Shown here: positions 32,925 through 64,000 of the stretch, piece by piece
Position numbering within the stretch: position 1 is the stretch's first letter
Layout: every line of letters starts with the position of its first letter
Source: Macrostomum lignano
Taxonomy: Eukaryota
Assembly: GCA_002269645.1 (NCBI GenBank)
Contig: NIVC01000514.1
Coordinates: forward strand, 434,001-498,000
Direction of reading: 5' to 3'
DNA: 64,000 bases
Translations under genes and position numbers: made by a program
Notes under the pieces: model-generated
The model's input: only the letters and a program-made list of their open reading frames with translations
The model's database searches: none
What the model was told of the DNA's origin: nothing

Positions 32925-33180
32925 TTAGTTAGGGCTAGGTTTTAGGTTGGAGTTAGATTTTAGGTTAGGGCTAGGTTTTAAGTTGGAGTTAGATTTTAGG
33001 TTAGGGCTAGGTTTTAAGTTGGAGTTAGATTTTAGGTTAGGGCTAGGTTTTAGGTTGGAGTTATATTTTAGGTTAGGGCTAGGTTTTAGGTTGGAGTTAG
33101 ATTATGGGTTAGGGTTAGGGTTAGAGCTTAGGGATTTGAGTTTAGGATACGGTCTAGGTTAGTTTTAGGTAGGGTTAGGT
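32925..33180. repeat. TTAGG(G)-like degenerate array (36-bp higher-order unit)
   Basis: Unit ttggagttagattttaggttagggctaggttttaag. Confidence 0.85.
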
Positions 33181-39100: not shown

Positions 39101-39341
39101 CGCAGCTCGCTCGGCTCGGTGACGACACGTCGCCCGCTGCCGGCCAGGTTGCTGGCGTTGGTGGCCACCGGCTGCGGCTCAAGCGAGCGCTGAAGCATTT
39201 GAAGCTTTTCCCGCTTTTGCTGCGGCGGCTGCTGCTGTTGCTGTTGTTCCTGCTGCTGCTGCGGCGGCTGCTGAAGCTGCTGGCAGTTCTTCATGTACAT
39301 TGCAATCTGGTTGAAGAGCTGCTGCACTTCCTGCTGCTGCA

Positions 39342-39386
<45 letters not shown>

Positions 39387-39594
39387 GCTTGTGGTGTCTT
39401 TCCGCTTTTTGTGTTTTCCTCTTTCGCTGCTGCTGCTGCCCGCCAGCCTTGCCGCTGGCTGCTCCCGCTGTCACCGCAGGTGCGGGGCTGGGCTCTTGCT
39501 CTTTTATCTTGTTAATGACCTTCTCGAACTGCGCTGCCAGCTGAGCAGCCGTTTGAAAGAGTTGCTGCTCCGTGCTGTCGCCGCTTTCTGCCAT
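33175..39594 (-). CDS. Hypothetical multi-exon protein (Gln-rich N-terminus, no recognised domain)
   Basis: Exons 39594-38706, 36283-36069, 35587-35473, 34919-34753, 34654-34344 and 33394-(33175) all have canonical GT/AG and consistent phases (1,0,1,0,2), giving one open frame of ~640 aa. The 3' end is uncertain. Confidence 0.6.
34025..34276. repeat. 72-bp minisatellite x~3.5 (intronic)
   Basis: gccagcagttggg recurs at 34101, 34173 and 34245. Confidence 0.88.
35755..36041. repeat. 27-bp minisatellite (ccaaccccaatctccaaagccgctacc), preceded by a purine-rich tract at ~35595-35740
   Basis: Direct; intronic. Confidence 0.92.
36310..36957. repeat. 23-bp minisatellite (gagaatcagagagtgtgaggcat)
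   Basis: Direct; intronic. Confidence 0.95.
37394..37441. other. Perfect 20-bp hairpin with 8-nt loop
   Basis: cagggactactaaatactac-gagcgtat-gtagtatttagtagtccctg. Confidence 0.85.
37535..37930. repeat. TTAGG/TTAGGG-like degenerate interstitial array
   Basis: Runs of ttaggttagggttt(t)ggttaggatttagg. Confidence 0.85.
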
Positions 39595-42697: not shown

Positions 42698-43611
42698 TGC
42701 TGACGCTGTAGTCTCCCTACCGACAAGGAAAGGCGCTTTGTTGCTGACCAGTTTTGTCAGTGGTGTCCGCACAAAAGCCCTTCGTCGCACACGGTGATGC
42801 TGTTCTCAAGCTATTTAAGACCTAAAAAACAGAGCATTTTCACCGTAAATTTCTCCACTTCGGTAAACCATGCAATAAAAATGGAAGCCGACAGCAGATG
42901 GGTGTGCATGCAAATAGACGCTTTTCAAAACTGCCTTTAACAAAAAGGCAGTCAGCCTTCATTCCTCCAACAGTTGTCATAATTCAGGCGACTGGCAACT
43001 GTGGCCCAGTTGTGCGATCCGATAAAGAAACCGGCTCGATCGGCCGCCGCTGCCATTTAAGAGCCCTAAGTTAAAATGGAATCCTCATTTTCCCATTCAT
43101 CCCTTCTGTAGAAGCTGTTTGGAGGAGGATCAATAAGGGTTTTCTCTTCTTTTTTAGGGTCTAAGCAGCATGCTTTAGCGTTGTTTTTGTTGTTTGTTGT
43201 CTTTTCGCTTAATATTACAACCTCTTTGATGGTTGAATGATGTTTTCAATACACAAACATGCTGGTAAGTATCTGTAGAGCCTATTGTTTTTCAGTTTAT
43301 TCACGATGAGCGTCAAGTTATATTTTTTAAATCGTAATATTTTTTAAATAAAATTTCACAAAATAAATTCCTCTGAAAGTTACACATGTTAAAAATTAAA
43401 TTCTTTCCTTACAATCATTCAACATTACGCGGTAAGTTGGTTCAGTTATAACACTTCACAACAGAGAACATAAACAAAATGAGTAAAAAAGCATCCAGGC
43501 TGTAAGCATATCCCGGGTGCCAAAAAAATCTTGAGGCTCATGTCGACTTGTTAAGGCTTTATTAAGTATTGAAGTATTGAACCTGTGGAGTACATCCCGC
43601 AAATAGCCAGT

Positions 43612-44356
43612 TACGAGGCCAAAAAGTAGCGAGAATTGCTGTTTAACTCTGGAAATTCGAGCTTTTACTAAAATTAATCGATGTCTCTTGCAGCTCAGCT
43701 TCTCAGCTTTTATAGGAAGCAGTATTGTGTCGAAGCGTTTTGGTTTTAATGATTTTTTAATTATTTTTCTAAATAGCTGTCATATGTCACAAATTGAACA
43801 ATGAGCAACTAATCAACATCAAGTTTTTGATGAAACTCGGCAAGAAGCTATGGGAATGCCTCCAGCTGCTTCACGAGGTGTATAGAGATGATGCTAAGTC
43901 TCAGGCAAGGGTGCATGAGTGGCACAAGCGATTCCGGGATGGATAGGAGAGTGTCAAAGATGGGGCCAAAGTTCCTCACTGACGATCAAAAACTGCAATT
44001 GAACATCGAGACATTGAGACAGCTTTTGGCCAAAAGATAGGTCACAGAGTTGAGCCACCCACCTTATTCACCAGATATAGCGCTGTGTGATTCCTGGCTC
44101 TTTAACAAGGGGAAGCAGGTCCTCAAAGGATCCAGATTTCAAAACTAGGATGCCATCAAGGAGAGTGTGACAAGGGTGCTGAGGGGCGTCATGAAGGAGG
44201 GCTTCCAGGGCTGGATCAGGAGCTGGCACCAGCGATTGAGGCGATGGGTTGAAAGTGGCCGCAATTAATTTGAAGGCTGCAGTTGACTGAATTTGCATAA
44301 TTTGTTCTGAAATTTTTTCTAGCTAAATTCTCGTTCCATTTTGGCCGGACCTCATG
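43612..44356 (+). mobile_element. Internally deleted, degenerate mariner (Tc1/mariner) element
   Basis: N-terminal HTH-like EQLINIKFLMKLGK...LHEVYRDD...RVHEWHKRFRDG and C-terminal HHPYSPDIALCDSWLF...LKGSRF...WHQRLRRWVE...FEG, with stops and a missing DDD core. Degenerate TIRs: tacgagg..ccaaaaagtagcgagaatt and aattctcgttccattttggccggacctcat. Confidence 0.85.
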
Positions 44357-44663: not shown

Positions 44664-47600
44664 TCAACGAGATTCGCCGAAGTAGCCGTCATTACTTGAC
44701 TCGGCCTGTCGTTTCTCGTCCGACTGCGCGAGCTCGACACTGGCGCCAGCTTGTCCAAGACCGAGCTTGGCGCTAGATTCTTGCTTACTCGAGCGCTCTT
44801 TGCTGTCGCCGTCTTTAGTTGACTCGGCCTGTCGCTTCTCGTCCGACTGCGCGAGCTCGACACTGGCGCCAGCTTGTCCAAGACCGAGCTTGGCGCTAGA
44901 TTCTTGCTTACTCGAGCGCTCTTTGCTGTCGCCGTCTTTAGTTGACTCGGCCTGTCGCTTCTCGTCCGACTGCGCGAGCTCGACACTGGCGCCAGCTTGT
45001 CCAAGACCGAGCTTGGCGCTAGATTCTTGCTTACTCGAGTGCTCTTTGCTGTCGCCGTCTTTAGTTGACTCGGCCTGTCGCTTCTCGTCCGACTGCGCGA
45101 GCTCGACACTGGCGCCAGCTTGTCCAAGACCGAGCTTGGCGCTAGATTCTTGCTTACTCGAGCGCTCTTTGCTGTCGCCGTCTTTAGTGACTCGGCTGTC
45201 GCTTCTCGTCCGACTGCGCGAGCTCGACACTGGCGCCAGCTTGTCCAAGACCGAGCTTGGCGCTAGATTCTTGCTTACTCGAGCGCTCTTTGCTGTCGCC
45301 GTCTTTAGTTGACTCGGCCTGTCGCTTCTCGTCCGACTGCGCGAGCTCGACACTGGCGCCAGCTTGTCCAAGACCGAGCTTGGCGCTAGATTCTTGCTTA
45401 CTCGAGCGCTCTTTGCTGTCGCCGTCTTTAGTTGACTCGGCCTGTCGCTTCTCGTCCGACTGCGCGAGCTCGACACTGGCGCCAGCTTGTCCAAGACCGA
45501 GCTTGGCGCTAGATTCTTGCTTACTCGAGCGCTCTTTGCTGTCGCCGTCTTTAGTTGACTCGGCCTGTCGCTTCTCGTCCGACTGCGCGAGCTCGACACT
45601 GGCGCCAGCTTGTCCAAGACCGAGCTTGGCGCTAGATTCTTGCTTACTCGAGCGCTCTTTGCTGTCGCCGTCTTTAGTTGACTCGGCCTGTCGCTTCTCG
45701 TCCGACTGCGCGAGCTCGACACTGGCGCCAGCTTGTCCAAGACCGAGCTTGGCGCTAGATTCTTGCTTACTCGAGCGCTCTTTGCTGTCGCCGTCTTTAG
45801 TTGACTCGGCCTGTCGCTTCTCGTCCGACTGCGCGAGCTCGACACTGGCGCCAGCTTGTCCAAGACCGAGCTTGGCGCTAGATTCTTGCTTACTCGAGCG
45901 CTCTTTGCTGTCGCCGTCTTTAGTTGACTCGGCCTGTCGCTTCTCGTCCGACTGCGCGAGCTCGACACTGGCGCCAGCTTGTCCAAGACCGAGCTTGGCG
46001 CTAGATTCTTGCTTACTCGAGCGCTCTTTGCTGTCGCCGTCTTTAGTTGACTCGGCCTGTCGCTTCTCGTCCGACTGCGCGAGCTCGACACTGGCGCCAG
46101 CTTTCCAAGACCGAGCTTGGCGCTAGATTCTTGCTTACTCGAGCGCTCTTTGCTGTCGCCGTCTTTAGTTGACTCGGCCTGTCGCTTCTCGTCCGACTGC
46201 GCGAGCTCGACACTGGCGCCAGCTTGTCCAAGACCGAGCTTGGCGCTAGATTCTTGCTTACTCGAGCGCTCTCTGCGGTCGCCGTCTTTAGTTGACTCGG
46301 CCTGTCGCTTCTCGTCCGACTGCGCGAGCTCGACACTGGCGCCAGCTTGTCCAAGACCGAGCTTGGCGCTAGATTCTTGCTTACTCGAGCGCTCTCTGCG
46401 GTCGCCGTCTTTAGTTGACTCGGCCTGTCGCTTCTCGTCCGACTGCGCGAGCTCGACACTGGCGCCAGCTTGTCCAAGACCGAGCTTGGCGCTAGATTCT
46501 TGCTTACTCGAGCGCTCTTTGCGTCGCCGTCTTTAGTTGACTCGGCCTGTCGCTTCTCGTCCGACTGCGCGAGCTCGACACTGGCGCCAGCTTGTCCAAG
46601 ACCGAGCTTGGCGCTAGATTCTTGCTTACTCGAGCGCTCTTTGCTGTCGCCGTCTTTAGTTGACTCGGCCTGTCGCTTCTCGTCCGACTGCGCGAGCTCG
46701 ACACTGGCGCCAGCTTGTCCAAGACCGAGCTTGGCGCTAGATTCTTGCTTACTCGAGCGCTCTTTGCTGTCGCCGTCTTTAGTTGACTCGGCCTGTCGCT
46801 TCTCGTCCGACTGCGCGAGCTCGACACTGGCGCCAGCTTTCCAAGACCGAGCTTGGCGCTAGATTCTTGCTTACTCGAGCGCTCTTTGCTGTCGCCGTCT
46901 TTAGTTGACTCGGCCTGTCGCTTCTCGTCCGACTGCGCGAGCTCGACACTGGCGCCAGCTTTCCAAGACCGAGCTTGGCGCTAGATTCTTGCTTACTCGA
47001 GCGCTCTTTGCTGTCGCCGTCTTTAGTTGACTCGGCCTGTCGCTTCTCGTCCGACTGCGCGAGCTCGACACTGGCGCCAGCTTTCCAAGACCGAGCTTGG
47101 CGCTAGATTCTTGCTTACTCGAGCGCTCTTTGCTGTCGCCGTCTTTAGTTGACTCGGCCTGTCGCTTCTCGTCCGACTGCGCGAGCTCGACACTGGCGCC
47201 AGCTTGTCCAAGACCGAGCTTGGCGCTAGATTCTTGCTTACTCGAGCGCTCTTTGCTGTCGCCGTCTTTAGTTGACTCGGCCTGTCGCTTCTCGTCCGAC
47301 TGCGCGAGCTCGACACTGGCGCCAGCTTGTCCAAGACCGAGCTTGGCGCTAGATTCTTGCTTACTCGAGCGCTCTTTGCTGTCGCCGTCTTTAGTTGACT
47401 CGGCCTGTCGCTTCTCGTCCGACTGCGCGAGCTCGACACTGGCGCCAGCTTGTCCAAGACCGAGCTTGGCGCTAGATTCTTGCTTACTCGAGCGCTCTTT
47501 GCTGTCGCCGTCTTTAGTTGACTCGGCCTGTCGCTTCTCGTCCGACTGCGCGAGCTCGACACTGGCGCCAGCTTTCCAAGACCGAGCTTGGCGCTAGATT

Positions 47601-50600
47601 CTTGCTTACTCGAGCGCTCTTTGCTGTCGCCGTCTTTAGTTGACTCGGCCTGTCGCTTCTCGTCCGACTGCGCGAGCTCGACACTGGCGCCAGCTTGTCC
47701 AAGACCGAGCTTGGCGCTAGATTCTTGCTTACTCGAGCGCTCTTTGCTGTCGCCGTCTTTAGTTGACTCGGCCTGTCGCTTCTCGTCCGACTGCGCGAGC
47801 TCGACACTGGCGCCAGCTTGTCCAAGACCGAGCTTGGCGCTAGATTCTTGCTTACTCGAGCGCTCTTTGCTGTCGCCGTCTTTAGTTGACTCGGCCTGTC
47901 GCTTCTCGTCCGACTGCGCGAGCTCGACACTGGCGCCAGCTTTCCAAGACCGAGCTTGGCGCTAGATTCTTGCTTACTCGAGCGCTCTTTGCTGTCGCCG
48001 TCTTTAGTTGACTCGGCCTGTCGCTTCTCGTCCGACTGCGCGAGCTCGACACTGGCGCCAGCTTGTCCAAGACCGAGCTTGGCGCTAGATTCTTGCTTAC
48101 TCGAGCGCTCTTTGCTGTCGCCGTCTTTAGTTGACTCGGCCTGTCGCTTCTCGTCCGACTGCGCGAGCTCGACACTGGCGCCAGCTTGTCCAAGACCGAG
48201 CTTGGCGCTAGATTCTTGCTTACTCGAGCGCTCTTTGCTGTCGCCGTCTTTAGTTGACTCGGCCTGTCGCTTCTCGTCCGACTGCGCGAGCTCGACACTG
48301 GCGCCAGCTTGTCCAAGACCGAGCTTGGCGCTAGATTCTTGCTTACTCGAGCGCTCTTTGCTGTCGCCGTCTTTAGTTGACTCGGCCTGTCGCTTCTCGT
48401 CCGACTGCGCGAGCTCGACACTGGCGCCAGCTTGTCCAAGACCGAGCTTGGCGCTAGATTCTTGCTTACTCGAGCGCTCTTTGCTGTCGCCGTCTTTAGT
48501 TGACTCGGCCTGTCGCTTCTCGTCCGACTGCGCGAGCTCGACACTGGCGCCAGCTTGTCCAAGACCGAGCTTGGCGCTAGATTCTTGCTTACTCGAGCGC
48601 TCTTTGCTGTCGCCGTCTTTAGTTGACTCGGCCTGTCGCTTCTCGTCCGACTGCGCGAGCTCGACACTGGCGCCAGCTTGTCCAAGACCGAGCTTGGCGC
48701 TAGATTCTTGCTTACTCGAGCGCTCTTTGCTGTCGCCGTCTTTAGTTGACTCGGCCTGTCGCTTCTCGTCCGACTGCGCGAGCTCGACACTGGCGCCAGC
48801 TTGTCCAAGACCGAGCTTGGCGCTAGATTCTTGCTTACTCGAGCGCTCTTTGCTGTCGCCGTCTTTAGTTGACTCGGCCTGTCGCTTCTCGTCCGACTGC
48901 GCGAGCTCGACACTGGCGCCAGCTTGTCCAAGACCGAGCTTGGCGCTAGATTCTTGCTTACTCGAGCGCTCTTTGCTGTCGCCGTCTTTAGTTGACTCGG
49001 CCTGTCGCTTCTCGTCCGACTGCGCGAGCTCGACACTGGCGCCAGCTTGTCCAAGACCGAGCTTGGCGCTAGATTCTTGCTTACTCGAGCGCTCTTTGCT
49101 GTCGCCGTCTTTAGTTGACTCGGCCTGTCGCTTCTCGTCCGACTGCGCGAGCTCGACACTGGCGCCAGCTTGTCCAAGACCGAGCTTGGCGCTAGATTCT
49201 TGCTTACTCGAGCGCTCTTTGCTGTCGCCGTCTTTAGTTGACTCGGCCTGTCGCTTCTCGTCCGACTGCGCGAGCTCGACACTGGCGCCAGCTTTCCAAG
49301 ACCGAGCTTGGCGCTAGATTCTTGCTTACTCGAGCGCTCTTTGCTGTCGCCGTCTTTAGTTGACTCGGCCTGTCGCTTCTCGTCCGACTGCGCGAGCTCG
49401 ACACTGGCGCCAGCTTGTCCAAGACCGAGCTTGGCGCTAGATTCTTGCTTACTCGAGCGCTCTTTGCTGTCGCCGTCTTTAGTTGACTCGGCCTGTCGCT
49501 TCTCGTCCGACTGCGCGAGCTCGACACTGGCGCCAGCTTGTCCAAGACCGAGCTTGGCGCTAGATTCTTGCTTACTCGAGCGCTCTTTGCTGTCGCCGTC
49601 TTTAGTTGACTCGGCCTGTCGCTTCTCGTCCGACTGCGCGAGCTCGACACTGGCGCCAGCTTGTCCAAGACCGAGCTTGGCGCTAGATTCTTGCTTACTC
49701 GAGCGCTCTTTGCTGTCGCCGTCTTTAGTTGACTCGGCCTGTCGCTTCTCGTCCGACTGCGCGAGCTCGACACTGGCGCCAGCTTTCCAAGACCGAGCTT
49801 GGCGCTAGATTCTTGCTTACTCGAGCGCTCTTTGCTGTCGCCGTCTTTAGTTGACTCGGCCTGTCGCTTCTCGTCCGACTGCGCGAGCTCGACACTGGCG
49901 CCAGCTTGTCCAAGACCGAGCTTGGCGCTAGATTCTTGCTTACTCGAGCGCTCTTTGCTGTCGCCGTCTTTAGTTGACTCGGCCTGTCGCTTCTCGTCCG
50001 ACTGCGCGAGCTCGACACTGGCGCCAGCTTGTCCAAGACCGAGCTTGGCGCTAGATTCTTGCTTACTCGAGCGCTCTTTGCTGTCGCCGTCTTTAGTTGA
50101 CTCGGCCTGTCGCTTCTCGTCCGACTGCGCGAGCTCGACACTGGCGCCAGCTTGTCCAAGACCGAGCTTGGCGCTAGATTCTTGCTTACTCGAGCGCTCT
50201 TTGCTGTCGCCGTCTTTAGTTGACTCGGCCTGTCGCTTCTCGTCCGACTGCGCGAGCTCGACACTGGCGCCAGCTTGTCCAAGACCGAGCTTGGCGCTAG
50301 ATTCTTGCTTACTCGAGCGCTCTTTGCTGTCGCCGTCTTTAGTTGACTCGGCCTGTCGCTTCTCGTCCGACTGCGCGAGCTCGACACTGGCGCCAGCTTG
50401 TCCAAGACCGAGCTTGGCGCTAGATTCTTGCTTACTCGAGCGCTCTTTGCTGTCGCCGTCTTTAGTTGACTCGGCCTGTCGCTTCTCGTCCGACTGCGCG
50501 AGCTCGACACTGGCGCCAGCTTGTCCAAGACCGAGCTTGGCGCTAGATTCTTGCTTACTCGAGCGCTCTTTGCTGTCGCCGTCTTTAGTTGACTCGGCCT

Positions 50601-53600
50601 GTCGCTTCTCGTCCGACTGCGCGAGCTCGACACTGGCGCCAGCTTGTCCAAGACCGAGCTTGGCGCTAGATTCTTGCTTACTCGAGCGCTCTTTGCTGTC
50701 GCCGTCTTTAGTTGACTCGGCCTGTCGCTTCTCGTCCGACTGCGCGAGCTCGACACTGGCGCCAGCTTGTCCAAGACCGAGCTTGGCGCTAGATTCTTGC
50801 TTACTCGAGCGCTCTTTGCTGTCGCCGTCTTTAGTTGACTCGGCCTGTCGCTTCTCGTCCGACTGCGCGAGCTCGACACTGGCGCCAGCTTGTCCAAGAC
50901 CGAGCTTGGCGCTAGATTCTTGCTTACTCGAGCGCTCTTTGCTGTCGCCGTCTTTAGTTGACTCGGCCTGTCGCTTCTCGTCCGACTGCGCGAGCTCGAC
51001 ACTGGCGCCAGCTTGTCCAAGACCGAGCTTGGCGCTAGATTCTTGCTTACTCGAGCGCTCTTTGCTGTCGCCGTCTTTAGTTGACTCGGCCTGTCGCTTC
51101 TCGTCCGACTGCGCGAGCTCGACACTGGCGCCAGCTTGTCCAAGACCGAGCTTGGCGCTAGATTCTTGCTTACTCGAGCGCTCTTTGCTGTCGCCGTCTT
51201 TAGTTGACTCGGCCTGTCGCTTCTCGTCCGACTGCGCGAGCTCGACACTGGCGCCAGCTTGTCCAAGACCGAGCTTGGCGCTAGATTCTTGCTTACTCGA
51301 GCGCTCTTTGCTGTCGCCGTCTTTAGTTGACTCGGCCTGTCGCTTCTCGTCCGACTGCGCGAGCTCGACACTGGCGCCAGCTTGTCCAAGACCGAGCTTG
51401 GCGCTAGATTCTTGCTTACTCGAGCGCTCTTTGCTGTCGCCGTCTTTAGTTGACTCGGCCTGTCGCTTCTCGTCCGACTGCGCGAGCTCGACACTGGCGC
51501 CAGCTTGTCCAAGACCGAGCTTGGCGCTAGATTCTTGCTTACTCGAGCGCTCTTTGCTGTCGCCGTCTTTAGTTGACTCGGCCTGTCGCTTCTCGTCCGA
51601 CTGCGCGAGCTCGACACTGGCGCCAGCTTGTCCAAGACCGAGCTTGGCGCTAGATTCTTGCTTACTCGAGCGCTCTTTGCTGTCGCCGTCTTTAGTTGAC
51701 TCGGCCTGTCGCTTCTCGTCCGACTGCGCGAGCTCGACACTGGCGCCAGCTTGTCCAAGACCGAGCTTGGCGCTAGATTCTTGCTTACTCGAGCGCTCTT
51801 TGCTGTCGCCGTCTTTAGTTGACTCGGCCTGTCGCTTCTCGTCCGACTGCGCGAGCTCGACACTGGCGCCAGCTTGTCCAAGACCGAGCTTGGCGCTAGA
51901 TTCTTGCTTACTCGAGCGCTCTTTGCTGTCGCCGTCTTTAGTTGACTCGGCCTGTCGCTTCTCGTCCGACTGCGCGAGCTCGACACTGGCGCCAGCTTGT
52001 CCAAGACCGAGCTTGGCGCTAGATTCTTGCTTACTCGAGCGCTCTTTGCTGTCGCCGTCTTTAGTTGACTCGGCCTGTCGCTTCTCGTCCGACTGCGCGA
52101 GCTCGACACTGGCGCCAGCTTGTCCAAGACCGAGCTTGGCGCTAGATTCTTGCTTACTCGAGCGCTCTTTGCTGTCGCCGTCTTTAGTTGACTCGGCCTG
52201 TCGCTTCTCGTCCGACTGCGCGAGCTCGACACTGGCGCCAGCTTGTCCAAGACCGAGCTTGGCGCTAGATTCTTGCTTACTCGAGCGCTCTTTGCTGTCG
52301 CCGTCTTTAGTTGACTCGGCCTGTCGCTTCTCGTCCGACTGCGCGAGCTCGACACTGGCGCCAGCTTGTCCAAGACCGAGCTTGGCGCTAGATTCTTGCT
52401 TACTCGAGCGCTCTTTGCTGTCGCCGTCTTTAGTTGACTCGGCCTGTCGCTTCTCGTCCGACTGCGCGAGCTCGACACTGGCGCCAGCTTGTCCAAGACC
52501 GAGCTTGGCGCTAGATTCTTGCTTACTCGAGCGCTCTTTGCTGTCGCCGTCTTTAGTTGACTCGGCCTGTCGCTTCTCGTCCGACTGCGCGAGCTCGACA
52601 CTGGCGCCAGCTTGTCCAAGACCGAGCTTGGCGCTAGATTCTTGCTTACTCGAGCGCTCTTTGCTGTCGCCGTCTTTAGTTGACTCGGCCTGTCGCTTCT
52701 CGTCCGACTGCGCGAGCTCGACACTGGCGCCAGCTTGTCCAAGACCGAGCTTGGCGCTAGATTCTTGCTTACTCGAGCGCTCTTTGCTGTCGCCGTCTTT
52801 AGTTGACTCGGCCTGTCGCTTCTCGTCCGACTGCGCGAGCTCGACACTGGCGCCAGCTTGTCCAAGACCGAGCTTGGCGCTAGATTCTTGCTTACTCGAG
52901 CGCTCTTTGCTGTCGCCGTCTTTAGTTGACTCGGCCTGTCGCTTCTCGTCCGACTGCGCGAGCTCGACACTGGCGCCAGCTTGTCCAAGACCGAGCTTGG
53001 CGCTAGATTCTTGCTTACTCGAGCGCTCTTTGCTGTCGCCGTCTTTAGTTGACTCGGCCTGTCGCTTCTCGTCCGACTGCGCGAGCTCGACACTGGCGCC
53101 AGCTTGTCCAAGACCGAGCTTGGCGCTAGATTCTTGCTTACTCGAGCGCTCTTTGCTGTCGCCGTCTTTAGTTGACTCGGCCTGTCGCTTCTCGTCCGAC
53201 TGCGCGAGCTCGACACTGGCGCCAGCTTGTCCAAGACCGAGCTTGGCGCTAGATTCTTGCTTACTCGAGCGCTCTTTGCTGTCGCCGTCTTTAGTTGACT
53301 CGGCCTGTCGCTTCTCGTCCGACTGCGCGAGCTCGACACTGGCGCCAGCTTGTCCAAGACCGAGCTTGGCGCTAGATTCTTGCTTACTCGAGCGCTCTTT
53401 GCTGTCGCCGTCTTTAGTTGACTCGGCCTGTCGCTTCTCGTCCGACTGCGCGAGCTCGACACTGGCGCCAGCTTGTCCAAGACCGAGCTTGGCGCTAGAT
53501 TCTTGCTTACTCGAGCGCTCTTTGCTGTCGCCGTCTTTAGTTGACTCGGCCTGTCGCTTCTCGTCCGACTGCGCGAGCTCGACACTGGCGCCAGCTTGTC

Positions 53601-56600
53601 CAAGACCGAGCTTGGCGCTAGATTCTTGCTTACTCGAGCGCTCTTTGCTGTCGCCGTCTTTAGTTGACTCGGCCTGTCGCTTCTCGTCCGACTGCGCGAG
53701 CTCGACACTGGCGCCAGCTTGTCCAAGACCGAGCTTGGCGCTAGATTCTTGCTTACTCGAGCGCTCTTTGCTGTCGCCGTCTTTAGTTGACTCGGCCTGT
53801 CGCTTCTCGTCCGACTGCGCGAGCTCGACACTGGCGCCAGCTTGTCCAAGACCGAGCTTGGCGCTAGATTCTTGCTTACTCGAGCGCTCTTTGCTGTCGC
53901 CGTCTTTAGTTGACTCGGCCTGTCGCTTCTCGTCCGACTGCGCGAGCTCGACACTGGCGCCAGCTTGTCCAAGACCGAGCTTGGCGCTAGATTCTTGCTT
54001 ACTCGAGCGCTCTTTGCTGTCGCCGTCTTTAGTTGACTCGGCCTGTCGCTTCTCGTCCGACTGCGCGAGCTCGACACTGGCGCCAGCTTGTCCAAGACCG
54101 AGCTTGGCGCTAGATTCTTGCTTACTCGAGCGCTCTTTGCTGTCGCCGTCTTTAGTTGACTCGGCCTGTCGCTTCTCGTCCGACTGCGCGAGCTCGACAC
54201 TGGCGCCAGCTTGTCCAAGACCGAGCTTGGCGCTAGATTCTTGCTTACTCGAGCGCTCTTTGCTGTCGCCGTCTTTAGTTGACTCGGCCTGTCGCTTCTC
54301 GTCCGACTGCGCGAGCTCGACACTGGCGCCAGCTTGTCCAAGACCGAGCTTGGCGCTAGATTCTTGCTTACTCGAGCGCTCTTTGCTGTCGCCGTCTTTA
54401 GTTGACTCGGCCTGTCGCTTCTCGTCCGACTGCGCGAGCTCGACACTGGCGCCAGCTTGTCCAAGACCGAGCTTGGCGCTAGATTCTTGCTTACTCGAGC
54501 GCTCTTTGCTGTCGCCGTCTTTAGTTGACTCGGCCTGTCGCTTCTCGTCCGACTGCGCGAGCTCGACACTGGCGCCAGCTTGTCCAAGACCGAGCTTGGC
54601 GCTAGATTCTTGCTTACTCGAGCGCTCTTTGCTGTCGCCGTCTTTAGTTGACTCGGCCTGTCGCTTCTCGTCCGACTGCGCGAGCTCGACACTGGCGCCA
54701 GCTTGTCCAAGACCGAGCTTGGCGCTAGATTCTTGCTTACTCGAGCGCTCTTTGCTGTCGCCGTCTTTAGTTGACTCGGCCTGTCGCTTCTCGTCCGACT
54801 GCGCGAGCTCGACACTGGCGCCAGCTTGTCCAAGACCGAGCTTGGCGCTAGATTCTTGCTTACTCGAGCGCTCTTTGCTGTCGCCGTCTTTAGTTGACTC
54901 GGCCTGTCGCTTCTCGTCCGACTGCGCGAGCTCGACACTGGCGCCAGCTTGTCCAAGACCGAGCTTGGCGCTAGATTCTTGCTTACTCGAGCGCTCTTTG
55001 CGTCGCCGTCTTTAGTTGACTCGGCCTGTCGCTTCTCGTCCGACTGCGCGAGCTCGACACTGGCGCCAGCTTGTCCAAGACCGAGCTTGGCGCTAGATTC
55101 TTGCTTACTCGAGCGCTCTTTGCTGTCGCCGTCTTTAGTTGACTCGGCCTGTCGCTTCTCGTCCGACTGCGCGAGCTCGACACTGGCGCCAGCTTGTCCA
55201 AGACCGAGCTTGGCGCTAGATTCTTGCTTACTCGAGCGCTCTTTGCTGTCGCCGTCTTTAGTTGACTCGGCCTGTCGCTTCTCGTCCGACTGCGCGAGCT
55301 CGACACTGGCGCCAGCTTGTCCAAGACCGAGCTTGGCGCTAGATTCTTGCTTACTCGAGCGCTCTTTGCTGTCGCCGTCTTTAGTTGACTCGGCCTGTCG
55401 CTTCTCGTCCGACTGCGCGAGCTCGACACTGGCGCCAGCTTGTCCAAGACCGAGCTTGGCGCTAGATTCTTGCTTACTCGAGCGCTCTTTGCTGTCGCCG
55501 TCTTTAGTTGACTCGGCCTGTCGCTTCTCGTCCGACTGCGCGAGCTCGACACTGGCGCCAGCTTGTCCAAGACCGAGCTTGGCGCTAGATTCTTGCTTAC
55601 TCGAGCGCTCTTTGCTGTCGCCGTCTTTAGTTGACTCGGCCTGTCGCTTCTCGTCCGACTGCGCGAGCTCGACACTGGCGCCAGCTTGTCCAAGACCGAG
55701 CTTGGCGCTAGATTCTTGCTTACTCGAGCGCTCTTTGCTGTCGCCGTCTTTAGTTGACTCGGCCTGTCGCTTCTCGTCCGACTGCGCGAGCTCGACACTG
55801 GCGCCAGCTTGTCCAAGACCGAGCTTGGCGCTAGATTCTTGCTTACTCGAGCGCTCTTTGCTGTCGCCGTCTTTAGTTGACTCGGCCTGTCGCTTCTCGT
55901 CCGACTGCGCGAGCTCGACACTGGCGCCAGCTTGTCCAAGACCGAGCTTGGCGCTAGATTCTTGCTTACTCGAGCGCTCTTTGCTGTCGCCGTCTTTAGT
56001 TGACTCGGCCTGTCGCTTCTCGTCCGACTGCGCGAGCTCGACACTGGCGCCAGCTTGTCCAAGACCGAGCTTGGCGCTAGATTCTTGCTTACTCGAGCGC
56101 TCTTTGCTGTCGCCGTCTTTAGTTGACTCGGCCTGTCGCTTCTCGTCCGACTGCGCGAGCTCGACACTGGCGCCAGCTTGTCCAAGACCGAGCTTGGCGC
56201 TAGATTCTTGCTTACTCGAGCGCTCTTTGCGTCGCCGTCTTTAGTTGACTCGGCCTGTCGCTTCTCGTCCGACTGCGCGAGCTCGACACTGGCGCCAGCT
56301 TGTCCAAGACCGAGCTTGGCGCTAGATTCTTGCTTACTCGAGCGCTCTTTGCTGTCGCCGTCTTTAGTTGACTCGGCCTGTCGCTTCTCGTCCGACTGCG
56401 CGAGCTCGACACTGGCGCCAGCTTGTCCAAGACCGAGCTTGGCGCTAGATTCTTGCTTACTCGAGCGCTCTTTGCTGTCGCCGTCTTTAGTTGACTCGGC
56501 CTGTCGCTTCTCGTCCGACTGCGCGAGCTCGACACTGGCGCCAGCTTGTCCAAGACCGAGCTTGGCGCTAGATTCTTGCTTACTCGAGCGCTCTTTGCGT

Positions 56601-59600
56601 CGCCGTCTTTAGTTGACTCGGCCTGTCGCTTCTCGTCCGACTGCGCGAGCTCGACACTGGCGCCAGCTTGTCCAAGACCGAGCTTGGCGCTAGATTCTTG
56701 CTTACTCGAGCGCTCTTTGCTGTCGCCGTCTTTAGTTGACTCGGCCTGTCGCTTCTCGTCCGACTGCGCGAGCTCGACACTGGCGCCAGCTTTTCCAAGA
56801 CCGAGCTTGGCGCTAGATTCTTGCTTACTCGAGCGCTCTCTGCGGTCGCCGTCTTTAGTTGACTCGGCCTGTCGCTTCTCGTCCGACTGCGCGAGCTCGA
56901 CACTGGCGCCAGCTTTCCAAGACCGAGCTTGGCGCTAGATTCTTGCTTACTCGAGCGCTCTTTGCTGTCGCCGTCTTTAGTTGACTCGGCCTGTCGCTTC
57001 TCGTCCGACTGCGCGAGCTCGACACTGGCGCCAGCTTGTCCAAGACCGAGCTTGGCGCTAGATTCTTGCTTACTCGAGCGCTCTTTGCTGTCGCCGTCTT
57101 TAGTTGACTCGGCCTGTCGCTTCTCGTCCGACTGCGCGAGCTCGACACTGGCGCCAGCTTGTCCAAGACCGAGCTTGGCGCTAGATTCTTGCTTACTCGA
57201 GCGCTCTTTGCTGTCGCCGTCTTTAGTTGACTCGGCCTGTCGCTTCTCGTCCGACTGCGCGAGCTCGACACTGGCGCCAGCTTTTCCAAGACCGAGCTTG
57301 GCGCTAGATTCTTGCTTACTCGAGCGCTCTTTGCTGTCGCCGTCTTTAGTTGACTCGGCCTGTCGCTTCTCGTCCGACTGCGCGAGCTCGACACTGGCGC
57401 CAGCTTTTCCAAGACCGAGCTTGGCGCTAGATTCTTGCTTACTCGAGCGCTCTTTGCTGTCGCCGTCTTTAGTTGACTCGGCCTGTCGCTTCTCGTCCGA
57501 CTGCGCGAGCTCGACACTGGCGCCAGCTTTTCCAAGACCGAGCTTGGCGCTAGATTCTTGCTTACTCGAGCGCTCTTTGCTGTCGCCGTCTTTAGTTGAC
57601 TCGGCCTGTCGCTTCTCGTCCGACTGCGCGAGCTCGACACTGGCGCCAGCTTGTTCGCCTGTGACGCATAGTTTTTCTGATGTAGTTTGATTATCTTTTT
57701 TAAAGGCGAAACTCGTTTTTGATTCGTCCTTAGATAGGTGTATTCCTTGTCTTGAGGTGGACTTTGTTTTAGTTAGAGCTCCTTCTTTGGTTTCTTTTTC
57801 CTTTTTGTATATCCCGATTTGCTTTGTTTGATCGCCTGCGCCGGCCTCGACCTCGTATTGTCCGTGGCCTAGGGTTAATGCAACTTCTTGTTCATTGGTT
57901 CTTGCTGCTATTTTATGTTTTCCCTTTTTTACTTTGGCTTCCGTTCCCATGGATCCGTGCGTGATGCCTAATTGAGTGTCGTTGCGTTGTACCGATAAAC
58001 CGAAGTCATCATCTGCTGTTTTAACTTTTAGCTGATACTGCTTTCTTTTTAATTTGATGCCATCTCCAGACAACTCCACTTTGGTATCCTTTGGTGCGTT
58101 AGGCTTCTTCGGTTTTTTTACTTGCTGTTTGTATTTTCTTGGCATGGAGGAATGATTCATCTTGTTTTGCTTATTAGCAGTTGATAATGTTTTCGAGAGA
58201 GTTCTCTTGGCTTGATCTACGGCTTGGCTTGTCATGTCTCCTATGCTCTTTCTTAAATAATCCTCTAGTATAGCACTGACTACTTCGCTGGTTTGCGACC
58301 GCATTTGCTGCCCGACTTTGCTTGTCAGTTGGCTGAGATGCTCCTTATTTCTCATGTTTTTTTCCTTTAGCTTGAGATTAGGGTTGTACTCGATTTCCCA
58401 ATCGTCGCTTCCGTCAATTAAAATGCCATCTATATTTTTTACAATGTTCCCAACGACAGTTCTCAAGTTCTCAACGTGCACTCCGATGGCTGCTGCATCC
58501 ACCGCCACGGCTGCCAGCCTGAGGAAAACTAGGAGCCCTTTAAAGTGTTCTGCTAATTCAGAGTTTAAATTGCTCAGATATGACTTTATTGTATCCATGA
58601 CCTTTTCCATCGCTTCTGCATCGTGCAGAACTTGGTGTGCTGCCTCTTCCGTGGCTTCTTTAAGTGCCTTCAATACACTGGTTTGCAGCTCCGGAGTAAG
58701 CATGGAGAAATCGAATACATTCATTTTTTCCGTCTCTTGATTTTTCTGCACGCACATGGGAGCTGCTATTCGAACAACAATGTCGTACAGCCTTCCTCGC
58801 TGGGCTTCTTCCTCGCATTTTCCCTCGATATCGGCTTCAACATTCTTCTTCAACTTAGAAATTAAACTGTCAATGAGCCGTCTTTGAGCATCAGTTACAG
58901 CAAAGTCTGCTAAAAACTTAAACACGGGATTGTCTACTATACCTTTGAGCACTTTTACTGTATTTTCTCCAACCAACTTTGTGACCACAGATCCAGCTTT
59001 GGAATAGTATTTACTTCCGACTGAACTCATATTTTTCGCCACTGCTCCGAACTTTGTCGATAATTTTAAGTACCCAATAACTTTACTAAAGCCGAAAGTA
59101 AGTAGGGATAAGCCAATGTTTAGAGCCTTGCTTTTCAACCAAGACGTAGAATCAAATTCTCCTTTAAGTAAACCCATGGTACCGGCCAATATGTCACTGA
59201 AGCCTTCGAAGACTAAGTTAACACCGCCAACAGAACTCATAACGCAGCCAATGGCGATCTCGATTAGACCTAAAATTATTACCGCGATCGCGAATCGATA
59301 CTGGGGTTTCTTCATCACACTGAATAGCCTCACGTGACCCAATAAATAGAGTGACCTCAGCTCATCAAGTGTAATTCTGTCTGGGTCTTTCTCGATGTCC
59401 TTTATACAAGTGCTGATAGCGACGATTTGGCAATCTTTTAATTCTTCAAGCTTTTTTAAACTTTGTTCAATTCCAGCTTTGTACTTGAGGATAATATCAA
59501 TCCTAGTAGTACATTGGCCGAATAGTGCACTTTTATCAGACTTTTCATCCAATTTGAATGCTTGATCGGATGTAACCTCTTGATCAGCCTGATCCACTTG

Positions 59601-62600
59601 ATCTGTTTGATCGGATGTAACCTCTTGATCAGCCTGATCCACTTGATCTGTTTGATCGGATGTAACCTTTTGATCAGCCTGATCCACTTGATCTGTTTGA
59701 TCGGATGTAACCTTTTGATCAGCCTGATCCACTTGATCTGTTTGATCGGATGTAACCTTTTGATCAGCCTGATCCACTTGATCTGTTTGATCGGATGTAA
59801 CCTCTTGATCAGCCTGATCCACTTGATCAGCTTGATCCACTTGATCTGTTTCATCCGCTTTTAATCTTGCTCCAGAAAAAAACTGAGTCCACAAGGCGTG
59901 GGCTAGCCACGTTTCCTTAATTCTTGTTTTGGCTTCCTGCAAGTCGTTTTTGATATCTTCAATGCCGCTATCACCTTTCATTATCTTCGCATACGCTCTA
60001 TTGTAGTAGGCTATTGAAGACCAGGCGCAATTCATTGCAATAGCTGTAGTATATAAATCAATTGCTTTTTGGAAATCCTCTTGTCGTAAACATTTGTCCG
60101 CAAGTTTTAGAGTTTGAAACGGACTCATTAAACAATCTGATTCAATATTTTTTGTGGCGTCCTTGAAAGTTTCCTTGACTTCTCTAATATACTTGTCTGT
60201 GTTTGGTTTGCTAAAGTCGGCAGTGTGGCACAAAATTGTCTTTAGATGCATTCCCCAGATTTCTTTCAGACAGTTTAATTTGAGCTTTAGGTCTATATCA
60301 TCCTTATTTGCCTGGCGGTACTTTGTTAATGAGCGACTGAAGCGACGAAACAGACTTTCCTTGAATTCTACTTCAGGCATAGAAAATTCCGTATGATTTC
60401 GCAGCTCTTGTAAACTGGCCTCCCGCCTCACTTGCTTCATCTCCTCTACCGAGTCGCAGTCAGCAAAGCAAGCGCTAAGACCCTCCTGGCTTAGAATTAA
60501 TGTCGCAGAACCCCGCTGACCCTTGCGTCCACTGCGACCACACACTTGCTCCTCGACTCGCTGATTCAAGGGGAGAAATGTGACAAGTACGTGCAGACCT
60601 CCAGCTGCCTCTGCTTCATCGTTTACTTTCACGTCCGTGCCTCTGCCTGCCAAATTCGTGGCCACAATCACATCTCCTGGACCAACAATCAGCTCAGACT
60701 TTGTATCTTCGTTCCTGATGTACCTTTTAGGCGTAACCCCGTGACATCGGCGAGTTACCTCGTTGAGAACGAGATCAGCACTGTTTATGTCCTCACAAAC
60801 AATCAGAGTTGGCCGGTGCCTTTCCTTCTTTACTAGCTGGCAAAGCTTTGAGATGCACTCAGATTTGGTTTCGGTGACAATGCCCGGGTTCTCTACTAGC
60901 CGGCGTTCCCTGAACGGAGGAATATAGTTTAGCTGTACTTTGTAGGTTTTGCGCATGAACTCCTTCTCGTGCTCCTCCCCGAGAGTCCCAGAAACGCCGA
61001 ACACCGCGGTGCCATACCGACGGAAAAAATATAAATTTGATAAAAAGTTTGTTTCTAAACCAAGAGGTCTCATTTGTAGACGATGCTTCAGCTGCAGGAA
61101 CTGCTGCAGTCCATCGCTCCATCTCATGTTTTCTTGAACCACACCTGTGTGCTTGAAGTCCACAGGCACAGCATCTCCGTCCTGCAAGAGGTAGTCGCGT
61201 CCGGGCTGCAGAACTCCTGCGGTGAGAGCACTGTTGATCCAGACGTCAAGCATATCGTCGATGAACCCTTTCAGGTGTTTTGGCATCGGCAGTTGCTTTT
61301 CCTTGCTAGTTACTTCCGTTTTAGAGTCGTCAGTTGAATCCTTTAAGGATGTGCTGTAATTAATTTGGGATTGAACATCCTCTCTTTTTTTCGAAATGAA
61401 GTCCTCAATATTGGCGAACAGCAATCTGCAGACACCGCCTTGGTTCACGAGAAGATGCGTGGAACAGTCTTCTGAATGCTCCAGTGGTTCTATTTCCGCA
61501 TTTCTGTAGATGTAGATGTTGCACCTGGGAAACTGGAGCAAGGAATCTGCGGCAGTGGTTAGAATTTCTCTTACTCTGCCGATATCGAATTGAGATAAAT
61601 CAACGGGATCTACAGTCTGATTCAAGAAGTCCTTCTTTTCCTCTGAGTTTATCAGTTCTTTCTGAAGTAGCGTTTCAATTAACTCATTGAATTCCTCATC
61701 GGACGTTAGTTCTTTAAGGAAGTAGAGAAATGTCATTGCCTGCTCTGCAACCATTTCACCTCCATGCACGGTGTTTAGAACCTGACAACCGAATGTGGCT
61801 CTGAAAATCGTCGGAAAAACTGGGTCCAGCATTTTCATGTCTCCCACATCCTGAGAAAGATACGTTAGCTGCACTCCCTGGTCGAGCAGCAGTGAATCGA
61901 CCTCATCCACAATAACTGCGTCGAAGCTTCTTGTGCCACGAATTTCTTTAAACTGGAACTCGTGCCGCAAAACGTCACCTGCAAATGAAGACACCGTGCC
62001 ATACACTATTTTGGACTCATAACACTCTTTTGGTTTTTTATGATTAATGTTGCAGCTAACGGTAACTTTGCATTCTTGATAAAAATCGTGCCATTCTTGG
62101 CAGTCTCTTTCAGCCAGAACTTCAGAGGGTGCAACGACGTCAACTGACGTCCTCCCGAGAAGCAGAAGTCCGACGGCGGTCATTGCCACAATGCACGATT
62201 TTCCTTCGCCAGTCAGAATCTGCAAAATTTGTCCAAATTTCTTGCTAGCAGAGCTTTTGAGCAAGGCAGCAGCACTGAGAAGTTGAGTGTTCCGCGGAAG
62301 ATATCCTTTACATTTTCTCACTGCCTTTGACAGATCAATCAAAATTTTGTGCAATGGTGGTTCCTTTCCACGCTCCCATAGTTTGATTTTGCTAAGCTTT
62401 TCGGTGATAGTTTTTTTTGCTTTGCTAAATCCGGACATATCAAAATATTTCGCGGTTTTACTGACGACATCTTCAAGCTCGGAAAGCTGATCGTCTTCAA
62501 ATCCTCCTGATTCCTTAAGTTCAGCTAGAAGCTCGCCGAGAGTCCTCTGCGCTGCCTGATCCTTTTCAAGTCGCTCAATGGTGGCCTTTGAAATAGTCTC

Positions 62601-64000
62601 GCTGGAATCCAGAAGACCTTTCAAATCGCAGCGGCTCAAAATCATCATCTGGACGACCTGTCTTACTTGATCAGGTGTCGAGTCACTAGAGTGAATGAGC
62701 TCCATTAGCTTGAGCGTGCTTGCCGAATCCCAGTGATGCATTGACAGAATGAGCTCAACCACACATTCGGTGTCCGATTTGTTATCAAGATAGTCGGCGA
62801 TGCCAGCAGTTTTCAGCATTGCTATCAAGACGGATCGGAGTCTCTTCAAGTCGGTGTCTGTATTCTGGGTAGGCCAGAGTCGAGTAATATCTTCAGCCAC
62901 TAAGAGTAGCTTGAGCAGAATTTTTATGACAGGAGTTGTCTCATTCTGCTTTTTTGCCATTAGCAGCTTATCCAGATGCTCTATGGCACAATTTGTGTCA
63001 CGGAACTGACGATAAAGTTCATCCATCTCATCTTCGTTCGAAAGGTCTTCAGCGGGTTCCTCTTTAAATAAAAGCAAAACCAGCAAGCCATAATACACCA
63101 TGTCGATTTCTGTTTTCGGAAAGCAAAATTCTATGAGAACCTTGTTTGCAGCGTCTACCACTTGGCCAGCCGACTCTTCATCTAGCAGCTTCAGAAGCGA
63201 CAAGTGTGTCGCCATTTGATTCTCTTTATTGGGCTGAGGAATTCGTGACTTCCAATGACTATAAAAATGATTCAGGAATTGCGATCTTGAAACGGCTTCT
63301 ACAGTTCTCAAAGCATTTTGACCACTCGCATTCTGACTTGCGTCTTTGAGACGGGTAAAAACATCTCCGACAGCATTTTCAATGCTTTTATCTATTTGGC
63401 TCCTGATATCTGCAACAGTAGCATCGGAAACTCCAAGGCTTGCATAGTCTTTTGCACACTTGCCGCGCACATGCTGTATCGAGACTCTCAAGCCTTTGAA
63501 CAATCTCTGCATTTCTTTTGCTCTATGGTTTTCCCTTGCTGTTGCCACCTGCCGTCCAAATTTCTCTGTTTTCTGTAGGTTCTCAGACGCTTGCTGATTT
63601 CTCCTTATCTTTGCTCGCTGCTCTTCAATTCTTCTTGAGATATCGGCCTCTCTTTCAGCTAGTTCAGCTTCGAACTCTCTTCTTCCTTTTTCAAGCTCCT
63701 CCTGCTGCGACTGCAGTCTCTTCTTCATCTCCAAGCTATGCTCTTCCATCTCAATCTGCTTCTTCTGCATCTCGCTCTGAAAGCGATCTTTCCTTTCTTT
63801 AAACTGCGCTTGCAGACGAGCTCTGTGTTGATCAGCTTCCGCATTGAGGCTGTTAAACCTTGCACTTGTCTCTGACGTAATCCGCTCCTTTTGGTGCCGA
63901 AAGCTTTCCAGTCTTTCCATTCGAATCTTTTCCACCTCTTTTTGTTCCTCCAGCAAATCCTGTTGGCCTTTATATTTCCAGTCTGTCTTTTGCTTCTGCA
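44664..64000 (-). CDS. Giant SecA-like (SecA_DEAD / SF2 helicase-fold ATPase) protein with TPR-like motif, hydrophobic helical segment and C-terminal 41-aa tandem repeats; 5'-incomplete; 1-bp frameshifts inside the repeat array as assembled
   Basis: ORF 56580..63956 is also stop-free from 63956 to the window edge. SecA motifs occur in order: QILTGEGKS (~62196-62222), IVDEVDS (~61896-61910), RDYLLQDGDAVPVDFKHTGVVQENMRWSDGLQQFLQLKH (cf. bacterial SecA DYIV.DG.V.IVD..TGR....RWSDGLHQA.EAKE), FGVSGTLG, VATNLAGRGTDVK, EEQVCGRSGRKGQRG. The reading frame enters the 123-bp array at ~57654, and the last unit ends ...AESSNDGYFGESR-TGA at 44664. Confidence 0.85.
44685..57654 (-). repeat. 123-bp coding tandem repeat, ~105 copies (41-aa unit GQAGASVELAQSDEKRQAESTKDGDSKERSSKQESSAKLGL)
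   Basis: The period of 123 nt is read directly from the sequence. About 12.97 kb / 123 gives ~105 copies. The core (~49.8-54.9 kb) is apparently identical copy to copy; variants cluster towards both ends. Confidence 0.97.
59562..59850 (-). repeat. 45-bp coding repeat x6 (DQTDQVDQADQ[E/K]VTS) inside the SecA-like ORF
   Basis: In-frame 15-aa repeat visible in the translation and in DNA (ttgatcggatgtaacc...tgatcagcctgatccacttgatctgt). Confidence 0.95.

Follow-up and report, generated by a model that had tools for sequence, protein, structure and literature searches.

A 123-bp tandem array occupies the 3′ end of a gene for a giant SecA-like ATPase in Macrostomum lignano, and we read it as a young, homogenized, in-frame coding minisatellite that would specify a disordered, Ser- and charge-rich tail with one weak beta-hairpin per unit, the deletions that break its frame in the assembly being artifactual; taken as a whole, this reading has, in our judgment, an even chance of being right. 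The locus lies in a 64,000-nucleotide stretch of contig NIVC01000514.1 (positions 434,001 to 498,000 of the forward strand), hereafter called the window. All positions are window coordinates, the gene is on the minus strand, and the analysis covers one assembled copy of the locus. Coding minisatellites are well known, and what makes this array notable is its size, its homogeneity, and its unusual host gene; the claim made for it depends on one draft assembly, whose characteristic errors bear directly on that claim.

Structure of the array

Tandem Repeats Finder resolves the array (44685-57654) into 105.6 copies with 99% matches and a score of 25737. On the gene strand, these comprise a partial unit, which starts at 57654 and covers unit positions 46 to 123, followed by 105 full units (Table 1), and the upstream boundary at unit position 46 is sharp at the DNA level. 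The same sequence is shared by 82 of the 105 full units, 43 of them in one uninterrupted stretch (5.3 kb), and the remainder carry four types of substitution and four types of deletion. Unit length is 123 bp in 91 of the full units, 122 bp in 13, and 121 bp in one. Units at the edges bear distinct variants in a fixed order (ddd...; ...cghi...jakal), and the last unit keeps the consensus through position 88 and then accumulates seven changes in positions 89 to 123. The array is about 10 times longer than every other array within the 64-kb window and, because 82 of its 105 full units are identical, looks recently expanded.

Translated in the gene frame, the unit is KERSSKQESSAKLGLGQAGASVELAQSDEKRQAESTKDGDS (41 residues). 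The unique open reading frame (ORF) enters the array as ...KKDNQTTSEKLCVTGEQAGASVELAQSDEK..., and the terminus reads ...AESSNDGYFGESR-stop, with TGA at 44664-44666; in terms of frame, entry (...SEKLCVTGEQAGASVEL... at 57654) and exit (...QAESSNDGYFGESR-stop at 44664) agree, both being in the same unit frame. As in a coding minisatellite, the period of 123 bp is a multiple of three, and the array keeps the phase of the coding sequence on either side of it, at entry as well as at exit.

These observations bear out much of what a prior sequence-only reading of the window had proposed, namely, that a SecA-like unique ORF flows into the first unit (the minus-strand ORF open from 63998 runs directly into the array), that the final unit diverges into a unique terminus ending in a stop at 44664 (divergence starts at unit position 89), that the unit length is divisible by three, and that the expansion looks recent. 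The array also appears, as that reading suggested, to be part of the gene, with which it is physically continuous and in frame at entry and exit, rather than an adjoining satellite. Two statements stand only in part: the core copies look identical in the 82 units mentioned but not in the rest, and the description of an in-frame coding array of ~105 copies of a 41-amino-acid (aa) unit holds for the number of copies, the period, and the phase at the ends but not for the frame between them, which is broken by 15 deleted bases.

Deletions in the array

All indels in the array as assembled are losses, with 15 bases deleted in 14 units and zero insertions. On the gene strand, the pieces 63998-56580, 56240-49725, 49313-47514, and 46532-44664 lie in one absolute frame, and the others are open in the other two frames. 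The assembled protein runs through ~5.6 units in the KERSS frame and then through 2.6 units in a second open frame (KLAPVSSSRSRTRSDRPSQLKTATA...) until a second slip leads to a stop; the gene frame would yield the peptides LGLGQAGASVELAQSDEK and LGLGK, and the second frame would yield LAPVSSSR. A tail of ~4,300 aa, as put forward in the sequence-only reading, is thus not what the sequence as given encodes, since that sequence stops at 56580, and the tail requires all 15 deletions to be assembly errors.

Nine copies are deleted at unit site 48 (GGACAAGC to GGAAAGC) and four at site 120 (GACAGCA to GACGCA), and the two singletons (GG to G and AA to A, at ~45202 and ~45193) sit in one and the same unit. 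In k-mer form, site 48 reads GGTCTTGGAAAGCTGGCG when deleted and GGTCTTGGAAAAGCTGGCG or GGTCTTGGACAAGCTGGCG when undeleted, and site 120 reads GGCGACGCAAAGAGC when deleted and GGCGACCGCAAAGAGC or GGCGACAGCAAAGAGC when undeleted; GGTCTTGGAAAGCTGG and GACGGCGACGCAAAG likewise mark the deletions, which affect nine and four of the 105 units, respectively. Both sites also vary by substitution, site 48 as C/A (A in four intact units) and site 120 as A/C (C in three), so that 13 of the 15 deletions fall exactly on positions at which the units differ by substitution. Only 4 of the 123 unit positions are variable in this sense, and by our own estimate, the probability that two independent real deletions would coincide with two of these four is ~0.4%. 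The two AAA runs, which are the longest homopolymers of the unit and occur ~210 times in the array, contain no deletions. Deletions affect 15 unit-sites versus 11 for substitutions, an excess of indels that is not typical of real divergence, and frameshifts amount to 1.15 per kb in the array versus none in the 7.4-kb unique ORF.

The window belongs to Mlig_3_7 (NIVC00000000; GCA_002269645.1), an M. lignano assembly produced by Canu 1.4 from PacBio data and polished by Pilon alone with Illumina and transcriptome sequencing (RNA-seq) reads (PMC5730564). The sequenced line, DV1, is a neopolyploid with extra copies of the large chromosome, and 180 to 312 Mb of the assembly is duplicated (PMC5730564). 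When Pilon was benchmarked on a PacBio assembly of P. falciparum, one run left ~26,000 of 32,702 indels uncorrected, and such indels create false frameshifts (PMC10359078). Short-read polishing could not have mended the interior of the M. lignano array, because reads are not uniquely placeable in a 13-kb near-identical array of 123-bp units. In a consensus of continuous long reads (CLR), a column holding two different bases among the reads tends to collapse to a gap, and mixed columns would therefore give rise to deletions exactly at polymorphic sites. Because the deletions lie on substitution sites, are absent from the AAA runs, and have no matching insertions, because the unique ORF is unshifted, and because of how the assembly was made, we regard all 15 as probable consensus artifacts and favor this explanation over real deletions. 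The outer 520 to 740 bp of the array is free of indels, but as a signature of paired-end polishing, this was given no weight, its chance being ~0.2 under a uniform spread.

Coding potential and a proposed history

The two arrays in the host ORF, the 123-bp array and a 45-bp minisatellite farther upstream, both have periods divisible by three, and the ~30 other minisatellites of the window show no bias toward multiples of three (19, 21, 23, 25, 22, 32, 40, and 55 bp, etc.). The 45-bp minisatellite is cleanly in frame, with an E/K variant encoded by CAAGAGG/CAAAAGG, and because this second array is likewise young and lies in the same ORF, the gene appears to tolerate in-frame expansions. Neither AATAAA nor ATTAAA is present on the gene strand between 57000 and 43761; because no canonical poly(A) signal precedes 43761, a transcript would be expected to extend through the array. 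That the array is transcribed and translated is, like its true copy number and any function, our inference. The protein databases hold no M. lignano fragments of the host ORF at all and are hence uninformative on its expression.

In the history that we propose, a C-terminal coding segment would have started to form tandem copies through replication slippage or unequal exchange, as in the other minisatellites of this genome, and the 123-bp unit would have kept the expansion in frame, each copy adding 41 residues that could be tolerated as part of a disordered tail. Homogenization would hold the core units identical, with the edge units keeping their variants, and the assembled copy would carry consensus errors where slightly different units or copies pile up in CLR reads of a neopolyploid. 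The real gene would read through tens to about a hundred units, or up to ~4,300 aa, as far as 44664, and the resulting tail might extend from a membrane-associated ATPase, serving as a flexible spacer or being tolerated as a passenger, rather than forming a folded domain. The fullest version of this history, in which the worm actually makes a membrane-anchored SecA-like ATPase of >6,400 aa (plus the N terminus outside the window) that is of bacterial-effector ancestry and ends in ~105 near-perfect orphan 41-residue units, each a hairpin with its linker (the C-terminal ~4,300 aa), is in our view doubtful.

The encoded peptide

Ser, Lys, Glu, and Asp are abundant in the unit peptide, which contains 8 Ser along with 7 basic and 8 acidic residues; Thr occurs once, and Pro, Cys, and aromatic residues are absent. 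An AlphaFold2 model of the last 249 unique residues together with 4.6 units, which as a single-sequence prediction is a weak test, has a mean predicted local distance difference test (pLDDT) score of 48 and a predicted template modeling (pTM) score of 0.27; pLDDT in the repeat region is mostly <50 and rises to ~50-55 at the hairpins. At this low confidence, each unit is predicted to form one weak beta-hairpin (8 + 5 residues; SAKLGLGQ / GASVEL) followed by ~24 disordered residues, and this weakly testing model shows no stacking between units, the hairpins being isolated from one another by disorder. The rod or beta-solenoid envisaged in the sequence-only reading therefore receives no support from the modeled tail, and our best guess from the prediction is that the repeat peptide would behave as a flexible, charged, Ser-rich disordered tail.

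When the tail plus 2.6 units was compared by a full HMMER scan with 1.84 billion representatives, the sole match was P0014 (E value, 8.5e-4), which to judge by its sequence looks like a beta-propeller-type protein with repeats of ~40 residues and which we rejected as a case of repeat-on-repeat inflation. Every Pfam match to the gene frame, to the second gene-strand frame, and to the unique tail was below the cutoffs; in a plus-strand frame, CarbpepA_inh reached 27.4 bits against a cutoff of 25, but no single stretch of any match passes alone, and all of these matches were set aside as additive artifacts of the repeat. A PDB sequence search with three units and an Rfam search of the whole window returned no matches.

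The unique tail immediately upstream of the array (57655-58250, minus strand) contains alternating hydrophobic and polar segments (VELSGDGIKLK, FGLSVQR, QLGITHG, EVALTLGHG, YEVEAGAG, KQIGIYKK, QGIHLSK, and TSFAFKK). These segments appear beta-hairpin-like and could be ancient degenerate units, which is suggestive only: the best local alignment scored 54 versus a mean of 37.5 for shuffled sequences (standard deviation, 5.7; maximum, 57; z of ~2.9), and the proposal was rejected as not significant.

The host gene

The host ORF, open from 63998 for >2,472 codons, has the coding-like composition GC1 > GC3 > GC2 across codon positions. Its identification as SecA-like, made already in the sequence-only reading, is upheld by Pfam matches to SecA_DEAD (E value, 8.4e-27; 94.6 bits), P-loop_SecA (35.8), DEAD, Helicase_C, and SecA_PP_bind (23.6 bits versus a cutoff of 23.5), as well as by SecA chains in PDB, which match at an E value of ~3e-37 over SecA residues ~100 to 545 only, with the matches ending at about residue 590. 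Neither the helical scaffold/wing domain (PF07516) nor SEC-C was found in the protein by Pfam at an E value of ≤0.01. Judged by its domain content, the protein is SecA-like but not a bona fide SecA, because the scaffold and wing domains and the SEC-C tail are absent. The hydrophobic Gly-rich segment at 59166-59294 is likely a conserved membrane hairpin, and counterparts of this segment are recognizable by eye in all giant homologues, where they follow a tetratricopeptide repeat (TPR)-like region.

Relatives of the host protein are distant, with 28 to 37% identity over only 15 to 22% of the query, the motor matching P0001 to P0006 at E values of 4e-98 to 1.6e-39, and comprise proteins of 2,600 to 3,500 aa from Clonorchis sinensis, Hyalella azteca, and Stomoxys calcitrans as well as metagenomic ones. 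The nearest of them, P0001 (37% identity), is encoded on a gene-dense bacterial contig along with PIN/MazE, resolvase, IS240, and ankyrin-repeat genes. Effectors of Amoebophilus, a symbiont of amoebae, contain SecA-like domains (Zhang et al. 2012, PMC3482391), as do giant toxins of actinobacteria (PMC8195603). Genes of M. lignano average ~5 introns, and the host gene is intronless over 7.4 kb. Because of this lack of introns, the bacterial contig of its nearest relative, and the scatter of its other relatives among animals, horizontal transfer from bacteria is a reasonable idea for the origin of the host gene.

Table 1. Coordinates of the array, its deletions, and the features of its host gene
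Feature	Position	Strand	Remarks
123-bp tandem array	44685..57654	-	Partial first unit 57578-57654, full units 57577-44678
Last diverged unit and terminus	44664..44800	-	Ends ...AESSNDGYFGESR, stop 44664-44666
First frame-breaking deletion (site 48, GGTCTTGGAAAGCTGG)	56908..56924	-	
Other site-48 deletions, 16-mer starts	49794, 49303, 47951, 47583, 47092, 46970, 46848, 46112	-	
Second deletion type (site 120, GACGGCGACGCA)	56596..56607	-	Also 56239, 55010, 46531
Giant SecA-like ORF as assembled	56580..63998	-	N terminus beyond window end; no introns in 7.4 kb; first in-frame stop 56580-56582
SecA-type motor (nucleotide-binding domain 1 [NBD1], preprotein-binding-like insert, NBD2)	60483..62366	-	Pfam, PDB matches
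Intact motifs	LTGEGKS 62196-62216; VDEVDSLL 61887-61910; ATNLAGRGTD 60633-60662; GRSGRKGQRG 60510-60539	-	
Second in-frame coding minisatellite	59562..59837	-	45 bp x 6.1, 98% identity, DQTDQVDQADQ(E/K)VTS
Hydrophobic Gly-rich segment (FAIAVIILGLIEIAIGCVMSSVGGVNLVFEGFSDILAGTMGLL), putative membrane hairpin	59166..59294	-	Read by eye

Alternative explanations

Several points weigh against a translated array. Whereas the frame of a coding minisatellite should run uninterrupted through all copies, that of the assembled array does not, and the ATPase ORF ends at 56580 (...KTATQRALE-stop). An open frame is itself poor evidence of coding in this array, since three of the unit's six frames are open, namely, two of those on the gene strand and one of those on the opposite strand. 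The array has a GC content of 0.59, versus 0.42 to 0.46 for the rest of the gene, and its peptide has no relatives at an E value of ≤1e-3 in a word-indexed search of 5.8 billion protein clusters. Its units show no signal of purifying selection, all four substitution types being nonsynonymous and one of the seven changes in the last unit being synonymous, numbers too few to test selection. GenBank calls no gene over 44664-49594, a weak point that carries little weight, because the annotation of M. lignano submitted there deliberately dropped transcripts overlapping repeats. As for the deletions, the existence of intact units with the A variant (four) and with the C variant (three) means that the error would not be systematic, and the mixed-column mechanism is a proposal drawn from general knowledge of CLR consensus behavior.

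If the deletions are real, which we think unlikely, the minisatellite would have grown from the 3′ end of the gene and lost its frame later, leaving a protein that stops at 56580 after ~5.6 true units and ~110 out-of-frame residues; the other 12 kb would be part of the transcript as an untranslated 3′ satellite or would lie outside the mRNA, and the deletion variants would have spread among units via unequal exchange. The assembled sequence itself reads this way, and the units with deletions are clustered in the manner of spreading variants (type b at 49832-46150 and type c mostly at 56717-55120); a GC content unlike that of the gene and an orphan peptide point in the same direction, and a slip in the A4 run created by the site-48 variant is biologically plausible. 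What tells against a real loss of frame is that both recurrent types coincide with the two main substitution sites, that site 120 has no slippage-prone run, that only deletions occur, at an indel-to-substitution ratio of at least 1, and that the assembly method is known to leave such errors. The last four units and the terminus are, moreover, back in the original unit frame; the 15 deleted bases restore the starting absolute frame, but with a chance of 1 in 3, this return was given no weight as evidence. A separate concern, which we treat as a serious possibility but put short of even, is that the copy number and homogeneity are assembly products, reads misaligned by whole units having been averaged into 82 identical copies, in which case the real array would differ from the assembled one in being much shorter, longer, or less uniform. 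Such averaging could explain 43 identical units (5.3 kb) within a 13-kb array built from RS II-era CLR reads of a notoriously hard genome, and the mixed-column signature at sites 48 and 120 itself implies a pileup of reads drawn from unlike units; the definite order of the variants in the edge units, on the other hand, suggests anchored reads, and read coverage of Mlig_3_7 is 130x. An assembly product of this kind would alter the copy number and not the nature of the feature, and it is compatible with any of the other explanations.

It is also conceivable, but improbable, that the whole locus is inert, with the SecA-like ORF being a copy of bacterial-effector ancestry that was acquired or duplicated recently and is not expressed, and the array one more noncoding minisatellite whose phase is incidental. 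Minisatellites are plentiful around it (~30 others in the window), and 15% of the M. lignano genome consists of tandem and simple repeats (PMC5730564); the gene is intronless against an average of ~5 introns, its closest relative comes from a bacterial contig that also carries toxin-antitoxin, insertion sequence (IS), and ankyrin genes, and its 3′ flank consists of transposon debris. The protein database lacks this protein, and the annotation, consulted over the last 5 kb of the array (44664-49594) and not over the gene body, calls no gene there. Against an inert locus, an old dead copy would not be expected to retain a frame of 2,472 codons in which every ATPase motif is intact and the composition is of the coding type, the missing annotation is explained by the repeat filter applied to the GenBank submission, and both arrays within the ORF have periods divisible by three.

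Comparison with known systems

(i) Mucin repeats. Mucin tandem repeats are protein-coding minisatellites, or variable-number tandem repeats (VNTRs), and the repeat of MUC1 is 60 bp, or 20 residues, long. The M. lignano array resembles them in its multiple-of-three unit, its tens to >100 near-identical copies, its more diverged edge units, its homogenization by unequal exchange, and its Ser-rich peptide with predicted disorder. It differs in that the unit has no Pro and one Thr, hence no mucin-type Pro-, Thr-, and Ser-rich (PTS) sequence, in that the frame is broken in the assembled copy, and in that the host is an ATPase and no glycoprotein.

(ii) Giant SecA-like ATPases. This family, which has no curated definition, includes Amoebophilus-type effectors and sporadic animal proteins that share with the host protein the homology of the motor (E values, 4e-98 to 5e-63) and, by eye, a TPR-like stretch, a Gly-rich hydrophobic hairpin, and a long helical C-terminal half. 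Unlike the M. lignano protein, they end in varied nonrepetitive modules (a YopJ-type acetyltransferase in P0001), and the 41-residue repeat is present in none of them.

(iii) Bacterial SecA. The host protein has the NBD1, preprotein-binding insert, and NBD2 of SecA, with intact Walker A and B and arginine-finger-like motifs, but it lacks the helical scaffold, wing, and SEC-C, exceeds 2,100 aa even without the repeat, and is encoded on an animal nuclear contig. The bacterial matches P0007 to P0013 carry PF07516, unlike the host protein.

(iv) Noncoding minisatellites of M. lignano. The ~30 other arrays of the window, several of them 0.5 to 1.2 kb long, are 90 to 99% homogeneous and in this respect similar. 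The 123-bp array is 10 times longer, its unit exceeds the 15 to 55 bp that is usual among them, and at each end it connects in phase with a long ORF.

Implications

Should the tail be translated, it would be an extreme case of a minisatellite-rich genome building thousands of new residues in evolutionarily no time, and among the coding tandem arrays reported in an animal, this one would be of the longest and most homogeneous. Individuals would be expected to vary in the length of the array, as would the subgenomes of the neopolyploid, and M. lignano, in which transgenesis and RNA interference are possible, would be a workable system for studying the function of the tail and its rate of change. 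The host gene is unusual in its own right, its relatives being giant effector-type proteins of intracellular bacteria. Should the frameshifts prove real, the locus would show a minisatellite truncating a gene. Either way, the locus calls for caution in annotation: CLR assemblies polished with short reads alone keep indel errors in long arrays, and the removal of repeat-overlapping genes from the public annotation of this genome makes such genes systematically invisible.

Genomic surroundings

Past the array stop, by ~720 bp, lies the remnant of a mariner/Mos1-type transposase (43773-43943, plus strand; HTH_48, E value of 1.6e-6), and because this remnant adjoins it, we refer to the 3′ flank of the gene as transposon debris. 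A fragment of a non-long-terminal-repeat (non-LTR) retrotransposon follows at 40515-42790 (minus strand), with an RVT_1 ORF (E value, 4e-35) and an RNase H ORF (E value, 8e-14) that overlap in different frames, reflecting either a decayed element or another assembly indel. Only two genes are annotated within 28686-49594, both on the minus strand and neither with a recognized domain: one at 38686-39594 encodes a Gln-rich protein of 302 residues, and one at ~34340-34920 encodes a protein of 160 residues.

The region 1-38000 is extraordinarily dense in minisatellites, with ~30 arrays that have periods of 12 to 95 bp, several of which extend over 0.5 to 1.2 kb (4475-5718, 22936-24151, 14475-15353, and 36296-36957), and its GC content ranges from 0.29 to 0.66 between 2-kb windows. 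Degenerate telomere-like arrays (CCCTAA/TTAGGG and TTAGG variants) occur at 17102-17659, 32928-33119, and 37528-37931, distant from the contig ends, and may be interstitial telomeric relics.

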